NCBI RefSeq assembly: GCF_006345805.1
Contig: NC_043011.1
Span: 50,542,464 to 50,606,463, forward strand
Length of the DNA: 64,000 nt
Source of the DNA: Octopus sinensis
Lineage: Eukaryota
Reading direction: 5' to 3'
Translations under genes and position numbers: made by a program
The notes under the pieces: generated by a model
The model's database searches: none
What the model saw: only the letters and a program-made list of their open reading frames with translations
What the model was told of the DNA's origin: nothing
Shown here: positions 1-47,204 of the stretch, piece after piece
Numbering within the stretch: position 1 is the first letter of the stretch
How the letters are laid out: each line of letters opens with the position of its first letter

Positions 1-150
1 CAATTTTAACGAATAATTTTACAAGTAGTTCGGTATGTAAAATGAATCATTATCGGTAAATTTATCAAAACCTAATTATGAGCATAATTATAATTAGGGT
101 TCTGCAAAATTTGTTTCACCACATAACAAAATGTAGGCTTACAATTATAT

Positions 151-240
<90 letters not shown>

Positions 241-439
241 GGAGAGAGAGAGAGAAGGGGGAGGAGAAAAGAGAGAGAGAGAGAAACCAATACATAAATA
301 CATGCCTATCACTGTTTGAGTTGCATAATAGTGGTTTTATCTCTAACTTATATTTTATATATTTATACTGTGAAATATGATTTAATACTAAGTTGAATTT
401 TTCGCTGTAAGTCTGGAGTTATACTCCCTAATAACATTA

Positions 440-473
<34 letters not shown>

Positions 474-1012
474 GCATACATACATACATACATATTTATA
501 TATGTAGATATAGATAGATTCATACATACATATATGCATATATATGTGTGTGTGCGTGTGAATTCACATACACATACGTATAGTTGTAATTTGAACATAT
601 GCAATTCATGTGTCTGTGTGTGGGGGTGAGAGTGTGTGTGGGGGTGAGTTTATGTGTGTTTGTGTGTGAGGGGGTGAGAGTGTGTGTTGGGGTGAGTGTA
701 TGTGTGTTTGTGTGTGTTGTGTGTGTGTGTGGTGTGTGTGTGTGTGGTGTGTGTTTGTGTGTGTTTGTGTGTGTTTATCTCTCATCTATTTTTCTGTATA
801 TTACTGAGGGATTTTGACGTCCAAATACTCGACCGGAATTATACTGAAATATATTCCTCGCTCCCACATATCTACAAATTCGAACATGAAACAACCATGT
901 GTATACTCTGTATGATATGAATGCGCAACAGGCAGAAACGACGGTGTTGTTACAAAAATTTAATATCGCAACAATCATTTGAGATTTTTAAAGGAAATTT
1001 CATATCTTTTAG

Positions 1013-1109
1013 GTGTCAGGGCTTATTTTAGAGAGATATGCACTAAAGAGGCAAGACGTTTCTGTCCATCTACCTTTGTACAAGTTACCAGAAGGGATTT
1101 ATTTTGCCG
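1013..1109 (+). CDS. Gene A exon 2 (97 nt, phase 1/2) of a secreted, GPI-type 6-Cys protein: (C)VRAYFREICTKEARRFCPSTFVQVTRRDLFC(R)
   Basis: Acceptor tttcatatcttttag|, donor |gtatgt, open frame, phase-compatible with neighbouring exons, same length and frame in copy B. Confidence 0.88.
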
Positions 1110-1135
1110 GTATGTATGTATGTATGTATGTATGT

Positions 1136-1214
<79 letters not shown>

Positions 1215-2400
1215 TGTTTCTTTATTAGCCACACAGGGCTGCACACAGACAGGACAAATTACAAGGTAGAGCTTTTCTTTTAAGGGTAAAAAAAGAGGGT
1301 TTGGTTTTCGATCAGAAGGGATCGGAAAGGGAAAGAAAGATGACAAAAAAAGGGGGGAATAAATTTTTTTAAAGGGGGGGAGAGGAAACAAAAATTGATC
1401 AATAGGGTCCGTTATCACAGAAATGTCAATATGAAGTGCAAAGGGGAGGACAGGTGAGGTTTACCTGTGGAAAGAAAAGCCTACGGAAAAGACCACGGTA
1501 ACCTCGGTCAATGAAGTCACATGTTATATTTCTTTTTTTTTTGCAGATAAGCAACTCTCTGTATTAATTTTTACGGTTCATAGAATCATAGGCTCAAGGA
1601 GGCTTCGTCATTCATACGTGCCATCCTTGCTACATTCACCCATCTTTTTTTAAAGCATTCACTAGACAAAACTTGCCTCTCTACTCTCACTTTCCACTTC
1701 AAGTGATACTTGAAGAAGTTGATGAGAGATTGACCAGAGAGGAAAGTGTTTGTCTCTATTCCTTTCAGGCGCGTCCACCAGATACATTCTTTCGCCATAG
1801 CCACAAGTATGATAAAAATAGCTCTTCCTTTCCGTTTGAAGGAAGGGGACGTGACGATATTAACGATAGACTCGGCTGATAAACCGACACGTCCCACACG
1901 TGACAGCAGTCGTTCGACATAAGCCCACAGGTCGGAAATTGCTGGACACTGCACGATTGCGTGCAGAGCGGTTTCGTCGCTCTGCCCGCATCTCGGGCAG
2001 GTCGTCCCCGTGTTTCTCGAGCCATGCCTATAGAGCTTATCCCGAACGGGTAGCGCTTCTCGGTAGCACTGCCAGGCCAGGGATCTCTGGAAGTTGTCCA
2101 AAGGTCCCGGCCCGAAAGTCGTTTCAAACAGGCGGGTCAGGTATTCCTCGTCGACGCCCAGGTTTGCCCCAAGATCGTCGTCGTACCTCCCCTCCACTAA
2201 TCCCCTATAGAATGCTTTGGTTGTGTTGAAGTCACTCAAGGTCGACCCGGGACGGCAGAGTTGCTTGAGAGCAACGCGACACTCGCGGTGCCATTCGCCC
2301 TTCCTCGACCTCTTTTTGATCCACGACTGCAGTTCGGTCATGGAGACGAGCTGCGGGAACGCGTGCCTCACAAACGGCGACCACACCTGTTCACCGTCGT
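1215..2400 (-). mobile_element. 5'-truncated Tx1/L1-clade non-LTR retrotransposon (ORF2 C-terminus with zf-RVT CCHC, plus 3'UTR) inside (GATA)n in gene A intron 2
   Basis: Uninterrupted frame with LAWQCYREALPVRDKL and CPRCGQSDETALHAIVQC; AATAAA just before the (ATCT)n flank; absent from the paralogous site near 10900-10985. Confidence 0.9.
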
Positions 2401-2411
2401 GACAGACAGAC

Positions 2412-2517
<106 letters not shown>

Positions 2518-3152
2518 TCTTATTGTTGCTATATGTGTTATATTTCATATGTATGCAATACTATATTGACAAATATTTGTTTTTATAAAAGCGTTTTCGT
2601 TATTAAAATGCTAGATGTATCTAGATGGATCCAAGTCGATGAAAGCAAGTATATGCATTATTTATATATTATGATGTCTTTTTGTACGACGAAATATAGA
2701 CGCAAATTTTGTCCAGTATTGATTGAAGAAATGATATCTCCGTTACCAATTCTCTCATTCTCTCCGCCGAGATATTAGCGGTTTACTGATATATATATAT
2801 ATTTCTGTCAACTAATTAGACAAAAGACAATACAAATTGTGCTAGGCAACACTCAGTTGCATATAAATAATTAGACAATTATTTTGGACAATTTTGTATT
2901 CAATTTTGTATAATTTTTCTATCGATGTTTAAAGATCTCCCACAGTTAGGTTAAATTTTCTATCTAGTTGTAGAACTATGAATTTGTTAAGTAATTTTGT
3001 TTTTAAAACTGAGTATTAACTTTGGTTTAATCTTCTTATAATTGGGAGTCATTTGGAAGGCGAGTTTGAGTCCAGAATAGAGTTTATTTAAAAATATAAG
3101 CAATACAAGACTACCTGAATATGTAATTTTCATTCATATTTTTACCTTCCAG

Positions 3153-3249
3153 TACTTTCAAGGATTTTGATAATTGTTACTCGAAACATGTACCATATAG
3201 GACAAGTTGTTCAATGCAACTCAGAAAGGACTATGATATTAAGTGTAAG
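3153..3249 (+). CDS. Gene A exon 3 (97 nt, phase 2/0): TFKDFDNCYSKHVPYRTSCSMQLRKDYDIKCK
   Basis: Acceptor tttttaccttccag|, donor aag|gtaaat, open frame conserved in copy B. Confidence 0.88.
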
Positions 3250-3878
3250 GTAAATAGTTTTCATTAAAAGTTATTTGTCTACAACAATGAGCGAGTGAGA
3301 TGCTTACGGTTTAAAAAGAATTGTTCTATTGTAAGAATATAAGACATCATTGAAATATGACATTTCTAAATATTTCAGAGAGATATGAGCAGCAGTGGTA
3401 CGATAGAGTAGTTGTATACTGTCAACTTAATGTGACAGTCCCTTTTATTTAGCCCTAGGAAGCATCAACGCTTCCTGTCGGCCTTGACACATTTCCTGTG
3501 TCCTTATGTTTACAAGGAGGAGACAAGCACACCCAATCTAAAAACAAAATAATTATTTTGCCTAAAAACACCTTTCAAGGAACAATCGATCAATGAAAGA
3601 GAGAACATGTTATTTAGTTACATTTTTATTTTCTTTCAATTGGATACTAAATAATGTGGCTTAAGACTTAACGCGATGACATAAACGTATCGAATAGCCA
3701 TGGCTGCAATATTTTTTAATAGTCTCTAACAATCTATTATGTCTTACTTGCGAGATTTTTAATCGATCATAGTGCTATGGCAGCTATATTCAGTAGAGAA
3801 CTATAAATTTCACATGTGTATATGTCTGTATATGTCTGTAATAGCAAGTATTCACGATAATTTATCATTTTCTTTCAG

Positions 3879-3902
3879 GGTGGCTCTGGCAACACATTTG
3901 GT
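3879..3902 (+). CDS. Gene A micro-exon 4 (24 nt, phase 0/0): GGSGNTFG
   Basis: Acceptor ttatcattttctttcag|, donor |gtaagc, identical in copy B. Confidence 0.82.
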
Positions 3903-4804
3903 GTAAGCAAAACATTTCTACTACCGCTGAATATTCAGTATATGACTACAACTGCATCAATTTGAAGGATTGACTTTTTTTAATTTATTATAATACGGTT
4001 GAAACATTTCTTTAATGCAAACAGCTGTCTTTTTGCTATTAGTGATCTAGTGTGGTAAACATTTTTTCAATATGGCTTCAAAAACAGAAACATAAACATA
4101 AACAGATTGTTTTTTATATAGTATTATAGAGTGTAATTTCCCTATTATTTAATTGCAAAAGATCAAAGGAAAATATTGAAAAGTCAAATTTTTAACGTCC
4201 TAACTGGAATAGGAGTGTTCATAGTAATATAAAAAAACATGCGCCATATATGTAATACATATTCCGTGTCTGTTCTAAGGGAAGTTGTAGAAAATTGAAT
4301 TATGAAACCGCATAGTTACAATAACATTATGGATAGTGTAACTTATGTTATACACGGAATATCGCGTTTTGCATAAGAATAACAGTTAAAGGAATGATGT
4401 GCTACATTTATAATACGGATACGCTAGAGTTATTCCTTGCAGTAATATTTTGAATGTATTTTAGTAAAATATGATTGACTTTAATAAGAAATATGATATA
4501 ATTGTGATGGCATTACATAGCCATCTCAAATAAAATTCTATCGAATAAATTTTCAATGACGATGCTGTTTATTACGAGAAAGCACTCGGAAGGAAAATTT
4601 TGAAGAATAGCATTATGTACATTCCTCCGAATGAACAAGGATACCATAGCAGCAGGTCCGGTAATTCCCATAGCAGGAGAAATAGCTTTAGGACAGCATT
4701 ACTCTGCTATGAATCTATCAACCATTCTACTAAACCTAGGCCTACGTCATATTTTAAAAGAATCTCTAAGCATGCCTTATATGCTAAAATATGTAACATA
4801 CACG

Positions 4805-5090
4805 AGGGTTCCAGTTGATCCGACCAACGAAAAAGCTTGCTTGTGAACTTAACATGCAAGACGCAAAGCACTTCACAATCACTTTTACCCTTAATGTAGT
4901 TGTAAGGGAGATTCAGCGTGACACAGGATGTGTTGAAGCTGGTCCCTTGAAGTACAGATACTACTCATTTTTGCTAGCCGGGTGGACCTGTGCAATGTAA
5001 AATTAGGTTTCTTGCTCAAGAACACAAAGCGTCCCTGTGAATTTAACTTACATTCGGGAGCCGAATACCCTAACCAAAAGCCTCGCGCCT
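4805..5090 (-). mobile_element. Diverged tRNA-derived SINE
   Basis: Similar to the SINEs at 19116-19496 and 35308-35635 (gagattcagcgtgacacag, cttgctcaagaacacaa). Confidence 0.7.
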
Positions 5091-5298
5091 TTACACCTTA
5101 ATATATCCTCACAAATAACATAAAATTATATGTGGGCCTTACTAATATATTTTATGCTCACAGCACCGTAAAAAAACATAGGCCAATTGTATACTAATGG
5201 AAATGCAAATAGTAGCAGACTAAACTAGCTTACCTAGATCACTATAAATGTTTGTCGATATAAAACTTTGAATAACCAAACTTTTCTGTCATTTACAG

Positions 5299-5358
5299 GT
5301 TAGGAGCCAGTCACTATTCGCAACTGCTGTTATAAATCAATTACTCGCATATATATAA
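5299..5358 (+). CDS. Gene A terminal coding exon 5: VRSQSLFATAVINQLLAYI* (hydrophobic GPI-signal-like tail)
   Basis: Acceptor cttttctgtcatttacag|, phase 0, TAA stop; AATAAA at 5662 and 5820. Confidence 0.82.
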   Translation, partial: VRSQSLFATAVINQLLAYI

Positions 5359-6141
5359 GTATATATTATGTCACTACAAGTATGTCTGAGTATTATTTTG
5401 AAGACGTATTTTAATGAGATGAGTTATAGAAGGGAATTCTTAATATTGCAAGAGATCAGCTCTACTACACACATATCTACAACTCTATCTGTGACATTGA
5501 AGATAATTTCTAATGTTCTACACTGTATGCTGTAAATTTTGATTAAAATAACTATAAGACTTCATCGATTTTTACTATGATAACTCGTGTTATTTTCATA
5601 TCGGTTTAAACGTAACATTCGAAATATTCACACCCGGACAACAATGGTGCCACACCAGCAGAATAAATAGCATTAAGAGAAGGATAAATTGTTGTACGAT
5701 TAATTTTAAGCCACATATTCTACATTAAACAAAAAGTAACATTATCGTAACGTAAACTAGAATCTGACAGACACAGTACAATAACTAGACCTATACGACA
5801 TATTATAGACCCATACCTAAATAAAGCTCACATGACTGAAACAAGTAAAAGAGTAAAAGAGTAAAGAGTATATAATATATATATATATTTATATATAGGT
5901 TAAGTAATTGAGATTCTAGTGAATTCTAAAGAATTCACATGAATATGGTCCTTAACTAGGATGCACCGGAAATCTATATGGTGTTAACCATACGACAAGT
6001 GGGGTGATTACAAATAGGAAAAAAGCAACAAGAATGGATTAAAATCTCGGTACGATTTTTTGTAGCTTATTAAAGATGTCCTCGTACAAAACGATCGTAC
6101 CGAGATTTTAATCCATTCTTGTTGCTTTTTTCCTATATATT

Positions 6142-6582: not shown

Positions 6583-7413
6583 CAGGGGTTGGACAGAATA
6601 AGGGAAACACCAAGCATCACAGCATCATAATTTTGAATTATCTATAAACCGTCAAAAGCTTGTTTTTTGGTTTATTATTAGAGTTGCTAAATATGTTTTG
6701 CTAAAATTGCTATTTCGTTTCATATATCATCAGAAAAAGGTAATTAAAATTCATTAAAATGACGGATCTATCGGACTTTCCAAGAGGTCAAATTGTTGGT
6801 GCTCGTATGACAGGCGCTAGCGTAACGAAAACAGCCGAAATGTTTGGTGTATCAAGAAGTACTGTTTTGAGAGTAATGACAGCCTTTCAGAAAGACTGTC
6901 ATTGAAACAAAACTCCGGAAGAAAACCAAAACATTCAGATAGGGACCGTCGGACTCTTACGCGAAATGTTAGAAAGGTTCAAAAACGTGCAGTTCCCAAA
7001 ATTACTGCAGAGCTTAATGACCACCTCAGGAGCCCAGTTTCTACAAAAACCGTTCGCCTGGAGCTGAACAAAACCGGACTTCACGGGAGGGATGCAATCA
7101 GAAAACCATTACTTTCAAAAAACAAACTTTGCAAAGCGTTAAGAGTGGAGTAAAAACATATAGAATTGGTCCCTAGAGCAGTGGAAGAATGTTATTTTCT
7201 CAGATGAGTCCTCCTTTACCTTATTTCCGACCACCGACCAAGTATACGTGTGGAGACAGCCAAAAGAAGCATTTGACTCAGACTGCCTTCTTCCAACTGC
7301 TAAACATGGAGGAGGATCTGTGATGATTTGATGGGCTATATCTTGGAAATCTGCCGGGCCAATGGTTTCCCTTCATGGCAGAATTAATAGTGAAGGCTAT
7401 TTAAGCATTTTAT
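6583..7413 (+). mobile_element. Tc1-family DNA transposon, 3'-truncated and degenerate
   Basis: TA + TIR caggggttggacagaataagggaaacacc; ATG 6759 MTDLSDFPRGQIVGARMTGASVTKTAEMFGVSRSTV; HTH region and WKNVIFSDES motif with frameshifts. Confidence 0.9.
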
Positions 7414-8045: not shown

Positions 8046-8205
8046 ATGGCGGCTCTGACGAAAGTAGCATTAATTTTTGGGGGTCGTTCAATTTTTGTCA
8101 GCTGATCAATTGACCAACTGTGTAAAGCTATTAGTAACGTACCTGTAATGGCTTGTATAAACAGTTGTAAGCTAAAGTAACTTTAATTAATACATGAAGA
8201 TGTAT

Positions 8206-8341: not shown

Positions 8342-8378
8342 ATGAAATATTTTATCCTTATTTTCCTTGTCGTTTCTT
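8342..8378 (+). CDS. Gene B exon 1 (37 nt, phase 1): signal peptide MKYFILIFLVVS(C)
   Basis: ATG, basic residue, hydrophobic core, consensus donor t|gtaagt; joins exon 2 in frame (T+GT=Cys) giving a VRA cleavage motif after residue 16. Confidence 0.85.
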
Positions 8379-8715: not shown

Positions 8716-9120
8716 TTAGGTTGTCAAGAAAGTTCTTGCGGTTTTTAACCTTTATATTCAGATGCATATTATATCGATTCAAACAAAACTTTATTAATCG
8801 AAATAAACACCATCAGAATCAACACACTTTTGCCATGTTTATTTATGCCAGTAGCGTAAAAGTCCTGCGTTCTGGTGGTGATGAAGTCGTTGAAAGCGTG
8901 TTTGGTATCGTCTTGATGTTTGAAGCATTTCTCACGCAGGAAGTTGTCGAGAAGCTTGAAAAAGTAGTAGTCAGTAGGTGAGAGTTCTGGTGAGTATGGC
9001 GGATGAGGCAGAGTTTCGTAGCCCAATTCATTCAACTTCTGCAGGGTCAGTTGTGAGATATGCGGCCGAGCGTGGTCGTGGAGAAGAATTTGACGACTCC
9101 CCTAGAATGGACGAAAACGC
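8716..9120 (-). mobile_element. Mariner (DD34D) transposase 3' fragment in gene B intron 1
   Basis: LPHPPYSPELSPTDYYFF motif; TA + TIR ttaggttgtcaagaaagttcttgcggttt. Confidence 0.9.
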
Positions 9121-10801: not shown

Positions 10802-10898
10802 GTGTCAGGGCTTATTTTAGAGAGCAATGCACTAAAGAGGCAAGAAGTATCTGTCCATCTACCTTTGTACATGATGCCGGATGGGATTTATTTTGCAG
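10802..10898 (+). CDS. Gene B exon 2 (97 nt): (C)VRAYFREQCTKEARSICPSTFVHDAGWDLFC(S)
   Basis: Acceptor ttcatatcttttag|, donor cag|gtatgt, open frame. Confidence 0.88.
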
Positions 10899-11609
10899 GT
10901 ATGTATGTATGTATGTAAGTATGTATGTATAGATGGCTGGATGGATGGATGTATAGATGGATGGATGGATTGATGGATGGATAGTCTTATTGTTGCTATA
11001 TGTGTTATATTTCATATGTATGCAATACTATATTGACAAATATTTGTTTTTATAAAAGCGTTTTCGTTATTAAAATGTTAGATGTATTGAGATGGATCCA
11101 AGTCGATGAAAGCAAGTATATGCTTTATTTATGTATTATGATGTCTTTTTGTACGATGAAATATAGACGCACATTTTGTCCTTGAACAAATGATATCTCC
11201 GTTACCAATGTTCTCATGCTCTTGGCCGAGATTTTAGCGGTTTACTGATATATATATAATTCTGTCAACTAATTAGACAAAAGACAATACAAATTGTGCT
11301 AGGCAACACTCAGTTACATATAAATAAATAGACAATTATTTTGGACAATTTCGTATTCAATTTTGTATAATTTTTCTATAGATGTTTAAAGATCTCCGAC
11401 AGTTAGGTTAAATTTTCTATCTAGTTGTAGAACTATGAATTTGTTAAGTAATTTTGTTTTTAAAACTGAGTATTAACTTTGGTTTAATCTTCTTATAATT
11501 GGGAGTCATTTGGAAGGCGAGTTTGAGTCCAGAATAGAGTTGATTTAAAAATATAAGCAATACATGACTACCTGAATATGTAATTTTCATTCATATTTTT
11601 ACCTTCCAG

Positions 11610-11706
11610 TACTTTCATGGATTTTGATAATTGTTACTTGAAACATATAAAATATACCACAGGTTGTTCAATGCATTTCAGAATGGACTATATGTTTAAG
11701 TGTAAG
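11610..11706 (+). CDS. Gene B exon 3 (97 nt): TFMDFDNCYLKHIKYTTGCSMHFRMDYMFKCK
   Basis: Acceptor tttttaccttccag|, donor aag|gtaaat, open frame. Confidence 0.88.
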
Positions 11707-12889: not shown

Positions 12890-12913
12890 GGTGGCTCTGG
12901 CAACACATTTGGT
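12890..12913 (+). CDS. Gene B micro-exon 4 (24 nt): GGSGNTFG
   Basis: Acceptor ttctttcag|, donor |gtaagc, identical to copy A. Confidence 0.82.
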
Positions 12914-13760
12914 GTAAGCAAAACATTACTACCGCTGAATATTCAGTATATGACTACAACTGCATCAATTTGAAGGACTTTTTAAAATTTATTATAATAC
13001 GGATGAAACATTTCTTTAGTGCAAACAGCTGTCTTTTTGCTATTAGTGATCTAGTGTGGTAAACCTTTTTTTCAATATCGCTTCAAAGACAGAAACATAA
13101 CCATAAAACATAATGCAAAACCTCTGGAACATAAACAGATTGTTTTTCATATAGTATTATACAGTGTAATTTCCCTATTATTTAATTGCAACAGATCAAA
13201 GGAGAATATTGAAAAGTCAAATTATTAACGTCCTAACTGGAATAGGAGTGTTCATAGTAATAAAACATGCGCTATATATGTAATACATATTCCGTGTCTG
13301 GTCTAAGGGAAGTTGTAGAAAATTGCATTATGAAACCGTATAGTTACAATAACATTATGGATAGTGTAACTTATGTTATACACGGAATATCGCGTTTTGC
13401 ATAAGAATATCAGTTAAAGGAATGATGTGCTACATTTATAATACGGATACGCTAGAGTTATTCCTTGCAGTAATATTTTGAATGTACTTTAGTAAAATAT
13501 GATTGATTTTAATAAGAAATATGATATAATTGTGATGGCATTACATAGCCATCTCAAATAAAATTCTATCGAATAAATTTTCAATGACGATGCTGAGGGA
13601 CTTACTAATATATTTTATGCTCACAGCACCCTAAAAAACATAGGCAAATTGTATACTAATGGAAATGCAATTAGTAGCAGACTAAACTCGCTTACCTAGA
13701 TCACTATAAATGTTTGTCGATATAAAACTTTGAATAACCAGACTTTTCTGTCATTTACAG

Positions 13761-13820
13761 GTTAGGAGCCAGTCACTATTCGCAATTGCTGTTATAAATC
13801 AATTACTCGCATATATATAA
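13761..13820 (+). CDS. Gene B terminal coding exon 5: VRSQSLFAIAVINQLLAYI*
   Basis: Acceptor cttttctgtcatttacag|, TAA stop, AATAAA at 14123. Spliced CDS 37+97+97+24+60=315 nt = 104 aa plus stop. Confidence 0.82.
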   Translation, partial: VRSQSLFAIAVINQLLAYI

Positions 13821-47104: not shown

Positions 47105-47204
47105 NNNNNNNNNNNNNNNNNNNNNNNNNNNNNNNNNNNNNNNNNNNNNNNNNNNNNNNNNNNNNNNNNNNNNNNNNNNNNNNNNNNNNNNNNNNNNNNN
47201 NNNN
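47105..47204. other. Assembly gap (100 N)
   Basis: Direct reading. Confidence 1.

Follow-up and report, generated by a model that had tools for sequence, protein, structure and literature searches.

The Ly6/uPAR proteins are small, disulfide-rich and often anchored by glycosylphosphatidylinositol (GPI), with tandem gene clusters and fast-evolving exons, and the Er pheromones of Euplotes and the attractin of Aplysia are small three-helix, three-disulfide domains with fast-diverging surfaces. In the conotoxin-type and other venom or defence cysteine-rich superfamilies, a conserved signal peptide is combined with a mature region that is hypervariable around a fixed Cys framework, and the genes undergo tandem duplication with birth and death of copies, the mature exons outpacing the adjacent introns. 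The same features are found in a gene family of Octopus, described here from two tandem genes, copies A and B, in a stretch of 64,000 nucleotides (nt) of the Octopus sinensis genome (C15:50542464-50606463; contig NC_043011.1 of assembly GCF_006345805.1), hereafter the window. Relative to a neutral proxy, the mature-domain exons of A and B show an about fourfold excess of amino-acid-changing substitutions, with the six-Cys scaffold unchanged; the counts support this excess, and there is good support for positive selection acting on the mature domain. A and B read as paralogs in the assembled sequence, and quite probably they are young tandem duplicates within a family so far confined to Octopus, the mature domain of the two copies having been positively selected after the duplication. 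This Octopus-restricted gene family is undescribed, and no description of an Octopus six-Cys family was found in literature searches; the evolutionary pattern itself is textbook.

In the MgCRP-I family of Mytilus galloprovincialis, likelihood-ratio tests demonstrated positive selection and Cys residues are lost in some members; the array C-C-CC-C-C resembles that of cysteine-rich neurotoxins, and the mature peptide is encoded wholly in the last of four exons, behind a pro-region with a dibasic site and without a hydrophobic tail (PMC4558851). The octopus family, however, has the array C-C-C-C-C-C, a mature domain spread over two exons and a hydrophobic tail; it contains no adjacent Cys pair, and the C-C-CC-C-C array of conotoxin, MgCRP-I and inhibitor cystine knot (ICK)-type peptides is therefore absent. 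Unlike the conotoxin-type superfamilies, it possesses no pro-region, no dibasic cleavage site and no sequence similarity to them; its mature domain crosses two exons, has long helix-forming loops (x7 to x16) and is followed by a hydrophobic GPI-like tail. Compared with Ly6/uPAR, a beta-rich three-finger fold with 8-10 Cys, the octopus family has six Cys, is predicted to be all-helical and gives no Pfam hit. The Er pheromones and attractin are the nearest analogy to its predicted fold, but sequence similarity is absent, the Cys spacing and gene organisation differ, and those proteins are secreted without a GPI-like tail. In its behaviour the family resembles the conotoxin-like, MgCRP-I-like and GPI-anchored Ly6 families, with none of their defining frameworks.

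Gene structure of copies A and B

Comparison of the window with itself reveals a tandem duplication, the two units being 92-96% identical across the gene body and less where the sequence is repeat-rich. Each unit holds one five-exon gene, whose model was rebuilt in both copies, and all splice junctions are AG/GT and the same in A and B. The features are as follows.

1..5828 (+), duplication unit A, 3' part, collinear with unit B; the remainder reaches to about 11.2 kb beyond the left window edge
7.2 kb left of the window, copy A exon 1
1013..1109 (+), copy A exon 2, signal peptide end and Cys1-Cys3
1110..3152 (+), copy A intron 2, with ~635 nt of homology to B intron 2 at its 3' end
3153..3249 (+), copy A exon 3, encoding Cys4-Cys6
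3879..3902 (+), copy A micro-exon, GGSGNTFG
5299..5358 (+), copy A exon 5, hydrophobic C-terminal tail resembling a GPI-attachment signal, and stop codon
6134..14289 (+), duplication unit B, in collinear blocks with unit A
8342..8378 (+), copy B exon 1, signal peptide MKYFILIFLVVS and one base; donor GTAAGT
10802..10898 (+), copy B exon 2, 10 differences from A, none of them synonymous
10899..11609 (+), copy B intron 2, unique part 10985-11609 with 22 mismatches to A
11610..11706 (+), copy B exon 3, 15 differences from A, again none synonymous
12890..12913 (+), copy B micro-exon, same as A
13761..13820 (+), copy B exon 5, hydrophobic tail and stop codon, one difference from A

Exon 1 encodes the signal peptide MKY(F/L)ILIFLVVS, and exons 2 and 3, of 97 nt each, encode the signal peptide end and a 61-residue mature domain with six Cys. 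The 24-nt micro-exon encodes GGSGNTFG, including the run of small residues GGSGN, and exon 5 adds VRSQSLFA(I/T)AVINQLLAYI and the stop codon, giving precursors of 104 residues in both copies.

Divergence of the mature-domain exons

Between A and B, 10 of 97 nt differ in exon 2 and 15 of 97 in exon 3, together 25 of 194 nt, which is exactly the count of the initial annotation, now reproduced on rebuilt gene models. These differences fall in 20 codons, every one of which changes the residue, and no codon differs only synonymously, again as had been claimed. Codon positions 1, 2 and 3 carry 13, 8 and 4 of the differences, and the radical exchange QVTRR/HDAGW was correctly placed at precursor residues 36-40. 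Across the whole gene, all 22 differing codons are residue-changing, and 20 of them lie in the mature domain (33% of mature residues). The rest of the coding sequence is nearly unchanged, with one difference in 37 nt of exon 1 (L/F), none in the 24 nt of the micro-exon and one in 60 nt of exon 5 (T/I). The six Cys are the same in A and B; the reported invariance of these Cys, the micro-exon and the splice sites, with a single change in exon 5, is fully borne out.

The surrounding non-coding DNA differs far less. In the unique part of intron 2, where 20-25 differences in about 625 nt had been estimated by eye, 22 mismatches and 2 small indels are counted. Over all collinear blocks, with simple repeats masked, 230 of 5,220 columns differ (4.4%), the lowest segment being intron 3 (2.0%) and the highest the 5' flank (5.9%), and the non-coding windows of 97 columns that match the exon divergence are microsatellite or block-edge alignments. 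O. sinensis and O. bimaculoides are roughly three to four times as far apart as this overall value. The ratio of transitions to transversions is 7:18 in the exons versus about 46:53 in non-coding DNA, which is not a significant difference (P = 0.12).

By Nei-Gojobori counting over the mature domain (151 non-synonymous and 32 synonymous sites, with 24.3 and 0.7 differences, respectively), the non-synonymous divergence dN is 0.18 and the synonymous divergence dS is 0.02. In uncorrected proportions, exons 2-3 have 0.16 at non-synonymous and 0.02 at synonymous sites, versus a non-coding p-distance of 0.020-0.059 per segment and 0.044 overall. Divergence in exons 2-3 is higher than in the unique intron 2 sequence (Fisher P = 8e-6) and in the 5,220 masked non-coding columns (P = 3e-6), and the number of non-synonymous differences is far above that expected from each of three neutral proxies.

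Intron 2 rate: 5.3 non-synonymous differences expected, P(≥24) = 2.6e-9
All non-coding DNA: 6.7 expected, P(≥24) = 1.6e-7
5' flank, the most divergent segment (5.9%): 8.9 expected, P(≥24) = 2e-5

Synonymous differences, at 0-1 seen versus about 1.1-1.4 expected, are unremarkable against the non-coding rate. When 25 substitutions are placed at random and runs that create a stop are discarded, 4.7-6.8 synonymous steps are expected, and the probability of none is 0.0003-0.005.

Little-diverged introns beside divergent exons might also be produced by an old duplication, if gene conversion between A and B had homogenised the introns and flanks and selection had kept the tracts out of exons 2-3; the uneven non-coding divergence, from intron 3 to the 5' flank, is compatible with some conversion. 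However, this explanation predicts old synonymous divergence, and if dS were equal to dN (0.18), at most one synonymous difference would be seen with a probability of 0.03 and none with a probability of 0.005. The synonymous divergence of the exons (0-1 of about 32 sites) matches that of the introns and not that of an older duplication. Furthermore, exons 1, 4 and 5 are nearly identical too, the conversion tracts would need to end exactly at four splice sites, and the excess persists (P = 2e-5) against the most diverged segment. Conversion of this kind is very improbable as the source of the pattern.

The tandem array and the older copies

The tandem array in O. sinensis has the order X, Y, A, B, all in the same orientation, and its youngest members are copies A and B. 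The two older copies lie left of the window.

-30261 to -19743 relative to the window, copy Y, intact, with the same five exons and all six Cys kept
about -37708 to -33483 relative to the window, copy X, a pseudogene

In X, exon 3 contains an in-frame TAA, has lost one Cys and has a GC donor, and exon 2 was looked for in X and not found. The mature domain of Y is only about 30% identical to those of A and B. Between Y and A or B, the mature domain has dN 0.71-0.75 and dS 0.45-0.59 (omega, the ratio dN/dS, 1.3-1.6), versus dN 0.13 and dS 0.26 in the signal peptide and tail. Likewise, the mature coding sequence of Y is 44% diverged from that of B, versus 12.5-21% in alignable non-coding blocks (about 18% taken together). 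The older paralog thus repeats the excess of exon over intron divergence. With Y as outgroup, three of the A/B differences trace to a change in A and another three to a change in B, so both lineages have changed.

A pattern scan of 124 kb around the locus recovered the exons of A, B and Y only, and six-frame searches of the genome assembly (2.72 Gb) with B and Y returned only A and B, or Y alone; these protein searches missed the rest of the family, which surfaced when the conserved 3' and exon-1 regions were used as DNA queries. No paralog closer to either copy than A and B are to each other was found in the assembly, and the conversion from a third paralog that the initial annotation had named as a possible undoing of its reading accordingly fails.

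These data also bear on the idea that one copy is decaying under relaxed constraint, as an incipient pseudogene, or that a distant third paralog overwrote its exons 2-3. Copies are indeed born and lost in this family, as the in-frame TAA and lost Cys of X and the frameshifted copies of a second cluster (below) demonstrate. However, relaxed constraint cannot outrun the neutral rate, and the excess here is about fourfold. Decay would leave synonymous changes and stop codons, and only 23-42% of simulated runs of 25 substitutions stay free of stops, whereas both open reading frames, all splice sites and all Cys are intact in A and B; moreover, the changes lie on both lineages. As for overwriting, the whole-genome protein searches with B and Y yielded no donor, and Y matches neither copy in tracts. 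Decay or overwriting is scarcely credible here, slightly less so even than conversion between A and B.

The two units are set apart by their insertions. Intron 1 measures 8.2 kb in A and 2.4 kb in B, and intron 2 measures 2,043 nt in A and 711 nt in B, a size gap that the initial annotation did not mention. The surplus in A is a 1.3-kb insert present only in this copy, consisting of a (GATA)n expansion and a retrotransposon fragment, and inserts of about 0.55 kb distinguish the units in introns 3 and 4.

1586-2560 (-), non-LTR (long terminal repeat) retrotransposon tail in copy A intron 2, zf-RVT, E = 1e-7

Alternatively, A and B could be divergent haplotypes of one locus that the assembler placed in tandem, with balancing selection acting on the alleles. 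Assemblies of marine invertebrates often retain haplotigs, and a block of about 97.7 kb that occurs twice in the second cluster, with a 100-N gap nearby, means that this assembly may hold false duplications. Nevertheless, A and B stand in unbroken sequence, with no run of N between them (junction 5829-6133), and they differ by the several large insertions in introns 1-4. The older X and Y in the same array and orientation are expected from repeated real tandem duplication, and 4.4% non-coding divergence is high for alleles. The haplotype explanation is unlikely, and it would relabel the paralogs as alleles; the selection signal would stay. Errors of assembly in the variable positions themselves, a further doubt raised earlier, are judged unlikely, the changes being substitutions that preserve the frame and are confined to exons.

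Probable selection on the mature domain

Several points weigh against young paralogs under positive selection. The Fisher test of dN against dS inside the exons is marginal (P 0.007-0.04), an internal test that is weak because there are only about 32 synonymous sites, and for the same number of sites the 95% upper limit of dS is 0.09-0.15. The strong P values presuppose that non-coding DNA is a fair neutral proxy. Omega is below 1 in two ortholog pairs of the second cluster (M1 and M2), so a ratio above 1 is not family-wide. Positions that vary between A and B are not more variable across the family than the non-Cys positions that A and B share. The GPI signal was judged by eye, in a tail of about 14 residues only that includes N and Q. 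Finally, A and B were not found in a set of 5.8 billion proteins, which possibly does not cover the records of their own genome, and their gene models are predicted. Since the internal test is weak, the case rests on three lines, namely that the exons exceed non-coding DNA, that synonymous change is lacking and that the excess is confined exactly to two exons.

An aim of the A/B changes at the most family-variable positions was considered and rejected (entropy 2.59 vs 2.60 bits, P = 0.65). The initial annotation had proposed diversifying selection on a binding surface; selection stands, with the roughly fourfold excess, and the binding surface gains nothing from the entropy test, in which no enrichment appears. 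The mature domain has a net charge of +7 in A, +1 in B and +5 in Y, and the loss of six net positive charges in B looks at least partly like a directional shift, not pure diversification.

If A and B are young paralogs under positive selection, a five-exon gene would have been duplicated into the tandem copies A and B, and selection would then have fixed about 24 replacement substitutions in the mature domain, on both lineages, with B shedding about six positive charges. The Cys, an alanine, several aromatics, the signal peptide, the tail and the splice sites would have been kept throughout. The replaced residues may form the ligand- or receptor-binding surface of a cell-surface or secreted recognition protein. 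The pair constitutes a clean natural experiment, in which 4% non-coding divergence accompanies the replacement of 33% of the mature residues and a charge shift of six, and it is a good start for asking about binding partners. The value lies in the family and in a testable pair, with no new principle.

The wider family in Octopus

A second cluster lies 16 Mb from A and B on the minus strand of the same contig (C15 66.60-66.95 Mb), with at least 14 DNA hits of about 70% identity. The 170 kb examined in it (C15 66.795-66.965 Mb) contain the intact members M1, M2 and M4 together with partial members and pseudogenes, and several copies in the cluster are frameshifted. The block of about 97.7 kb present twice carries near-identical gene copies, one M2 copy having a 1-nt frameshift, and the 100-N gap is located at 66853447-66853546; the repeated block may reflect segmental duplication of very recent date or else an artefact of assembly. 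In total, O. sinensis has about 20 family loci, pseudogenes included. The exon plan, with a phase-1 signal exon, two Cys exons of about 90-100 nt and one or more tail exons, is common to A, B, Y, M1, M2 and M4, and the O. bimaculoides ortholog of M1 has it too.

In O. bimaculoides there are at least 15 "uncharacterized" family loci (LOC128249755-249946 and others), and LOC115219848 of O. sinensis is also a member. A profile of six members, including A, B and Y, retrieves three "uncharacterized" proteins of O. bimaculoides, P0001-P0003 (E 6e-23 to 2e-17), and the profile matches in this species include LOC128249827 and LOC128249826. In turn, a profile of these three proteins was compared with 1.84 billion representatives; at E ≤ 1e-3 it retrieves 18 proteins, each belonging to O. 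bimaculoides, O. vulgaris or O. sinensis, and this search gives no match outside Octopus. By BLASTP against a small family database, A or B matches P0004, P0005 and P0008 with E 1e-10 to 6e-14. No ortholog of A/B was identified in O. bimaculoides, where the best match to B is P0008 (32% identity to B and 37.5% to Y). P0007, which has the motifs CPSTF and FCRxFKDF, lies in an O. bimaculoides region syntenic with the second cluster. Cephalopod genomes contain many lineage-restricted genes, and one such family is here defined in three Octopus species, having been present earlier only as "uncharacterized LOC" entries.

Two members of the second cluster can be compared with their O. bimaculoides orthologs.

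M1 pair: dN 0.139, dS 0.194, omega 0.72; divergence 13.4% in exons and 12.6% in intron 2
M2 pair: dN 0.142, dS 0.294, omega 0.48; divergence 14.8% in exons and 26.5% in intron 2, the latter not reliably alignable

The dN/dS comparison with further sequences that the initial annotation had proposed is therefore divided, since Y against A and B exceeds 1 and these two pairs do not. Fast evolution is family-wide, and the strong excess is a feature of the lineage of the first cluster (Y, A and B).

One family member, P0014/P0020 (O. vulgaris CAI9735827.1, O. sinensis LOC115219848), has two six-Cys domains in tandem within a single protein of 147 residues.

Protein architecture and predicted structure

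The family layout consists of a signal peptide, a six-Cys domain, a linker and a hydrophobic tail resembling a GPI signal. In most members, the Cys framework is C-x7-C-x12-16-C-x8-C-x7/10-C-x11-C. The spacings are 7, 13, 8, 10 and 11 in A and B, loop 4 being x10 in A, B and Y (3 residues longer), versus 7, 12-16, 8, 7 and 11 in most other members; in three members, the length of loop 4 or loop 5 is off by one or two residues. In the alignment of the 18 proteins obtained with the O. bimaculoides profile, the six Cys alone are invariant and one Ala is nearly so; when A and B are included, in smaller alignments, the Phe preceding Cys3 is invariant too, and a few aromatic positions are kept in most members.

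A small or polar linker and a short hydrophobic C-terminus are common to nearly all members. The tails LFAIAVINQLLAYI and LFATAVINQLLAYI have mean Kyte-Doolittle hydropathies of 2.07 and 1.70, respectively. The GGSGN stretch, the polar spacer and the hydrophobic end of about 14 residues fit a putative GPI-attachment signal. If the micro-exon donor is read through, a second open tail, GVSKT(F)LLPLNIQYMTTTASI*, runs on to 3965 in A and to 12973 in B (12914-12973). This tail stays open in both copies, with one in-frame 3-nt indel as the sole difference, and it matches the C-termini of the O. bimaculoides isoforms P0007 and P0002. Because the read-through is open in both copies and the same tail ends the O. 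bimaculoides isoforms, A and B likely have two splice-selected C-terminal tails.

The structure was modelled with AlphaFold2 for the relative P0001, not for A or B. The model from three sequences is poor, with a mean predicted local distance difference test (pLDDT) score of 61, and that from the 18-sequence alignment reaches 79-86 in the domain. The latter has helices ending at residue 27 and spanning 38-55 and 57-72, with two Cys per helix, followed by a disordered linker and a C-terminal hydrophobic helix. Judging from this model, the mature domain probably folds as a bundle of three helices held together by three disulfides; the disulfide pairing, like the GPI anchoring, is presumed. A Foldseek search with the P0001 model, including the signal and tail helices, finds no neighbour in the PDB (every E ≥ 3.3), and B alone has no match among Pfam and PDB sequences.

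The family bears some likeness to the repulsive guidance molecules (RGM), which are GPI-anchored and begin with a helical bundle linked by disulfides, the N-domain. Both have the spacing (F)C-x8-C-x7-C. However, Cys2 of the family has no partner in RGM, and the precursors of 104 residues are without the vWD/GDPH module. Against RGM_N (PF06535), M1 scores 16.8 bits (E 0.008) and M4 16.3 bits (E 0.012), below the cut-off of 24.2 bits, and A, B and Y give no hit. The family profile reaches RGMA, RGMB and RGMC chains in the PDB with E 0.13-0.37, and with E 0.83 when a deeper profile is used. With hhalign, the octopus RGM N-domain is aligned over Cys3-Cys6 at 0.6-1.3% probability, and RGM is not recovered by Foldseek with the P0001 model including the signal and tail helices. 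The RGM_N match thus stays below the Pfam cut-off and short of significance by PDB profiles, hhalign and Foldseek; it serves as a lead and does not place the family among the RGMs. The canonical octopus RGM gene is located at C2:164242613-164242819, with the N-domain and the GDPH autocleavage motif CGLFGDPHLRTF in one exon.

A further-reaching reading is doubtful, if somewhat less so than the haplotype explanation. It would make the locus part of an Octopus-specific array of GPI-anchored three-helix mini-proteins, possibly derived from the RGM N-domain, in which a splice-selected second tail could allow release and the whole surface is recurrently selected as a diversifying recognition code. 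Candidate roles would then be modulation of nervous or chemotactile receptors, gamete recognition or immune recognition.

Other features of the window

The window is animal DNA of about 35% GC, rich in microsatellites and transposon remnants. Two DNA-transposon remnants, at 6821-7153 (+) and 8769-9101 (-), encode a Tc3-type helix-turn-helix transposase and a DDE_3 endonuclease; both occur in unit A too, and are therefore older than the duplication. The segment 44340-45520 is long low-complexity simple-repeat DNA, whose D/E/I/S-rich frames on both strands are spurious and do not represent a gene, and an assembly gap of 100 N lies at 47105-47204. Just 5' of copy B exon 1, at about 8051-8190, is a short interspersed repeat with many copies of about 80% identity across many chromosomes.

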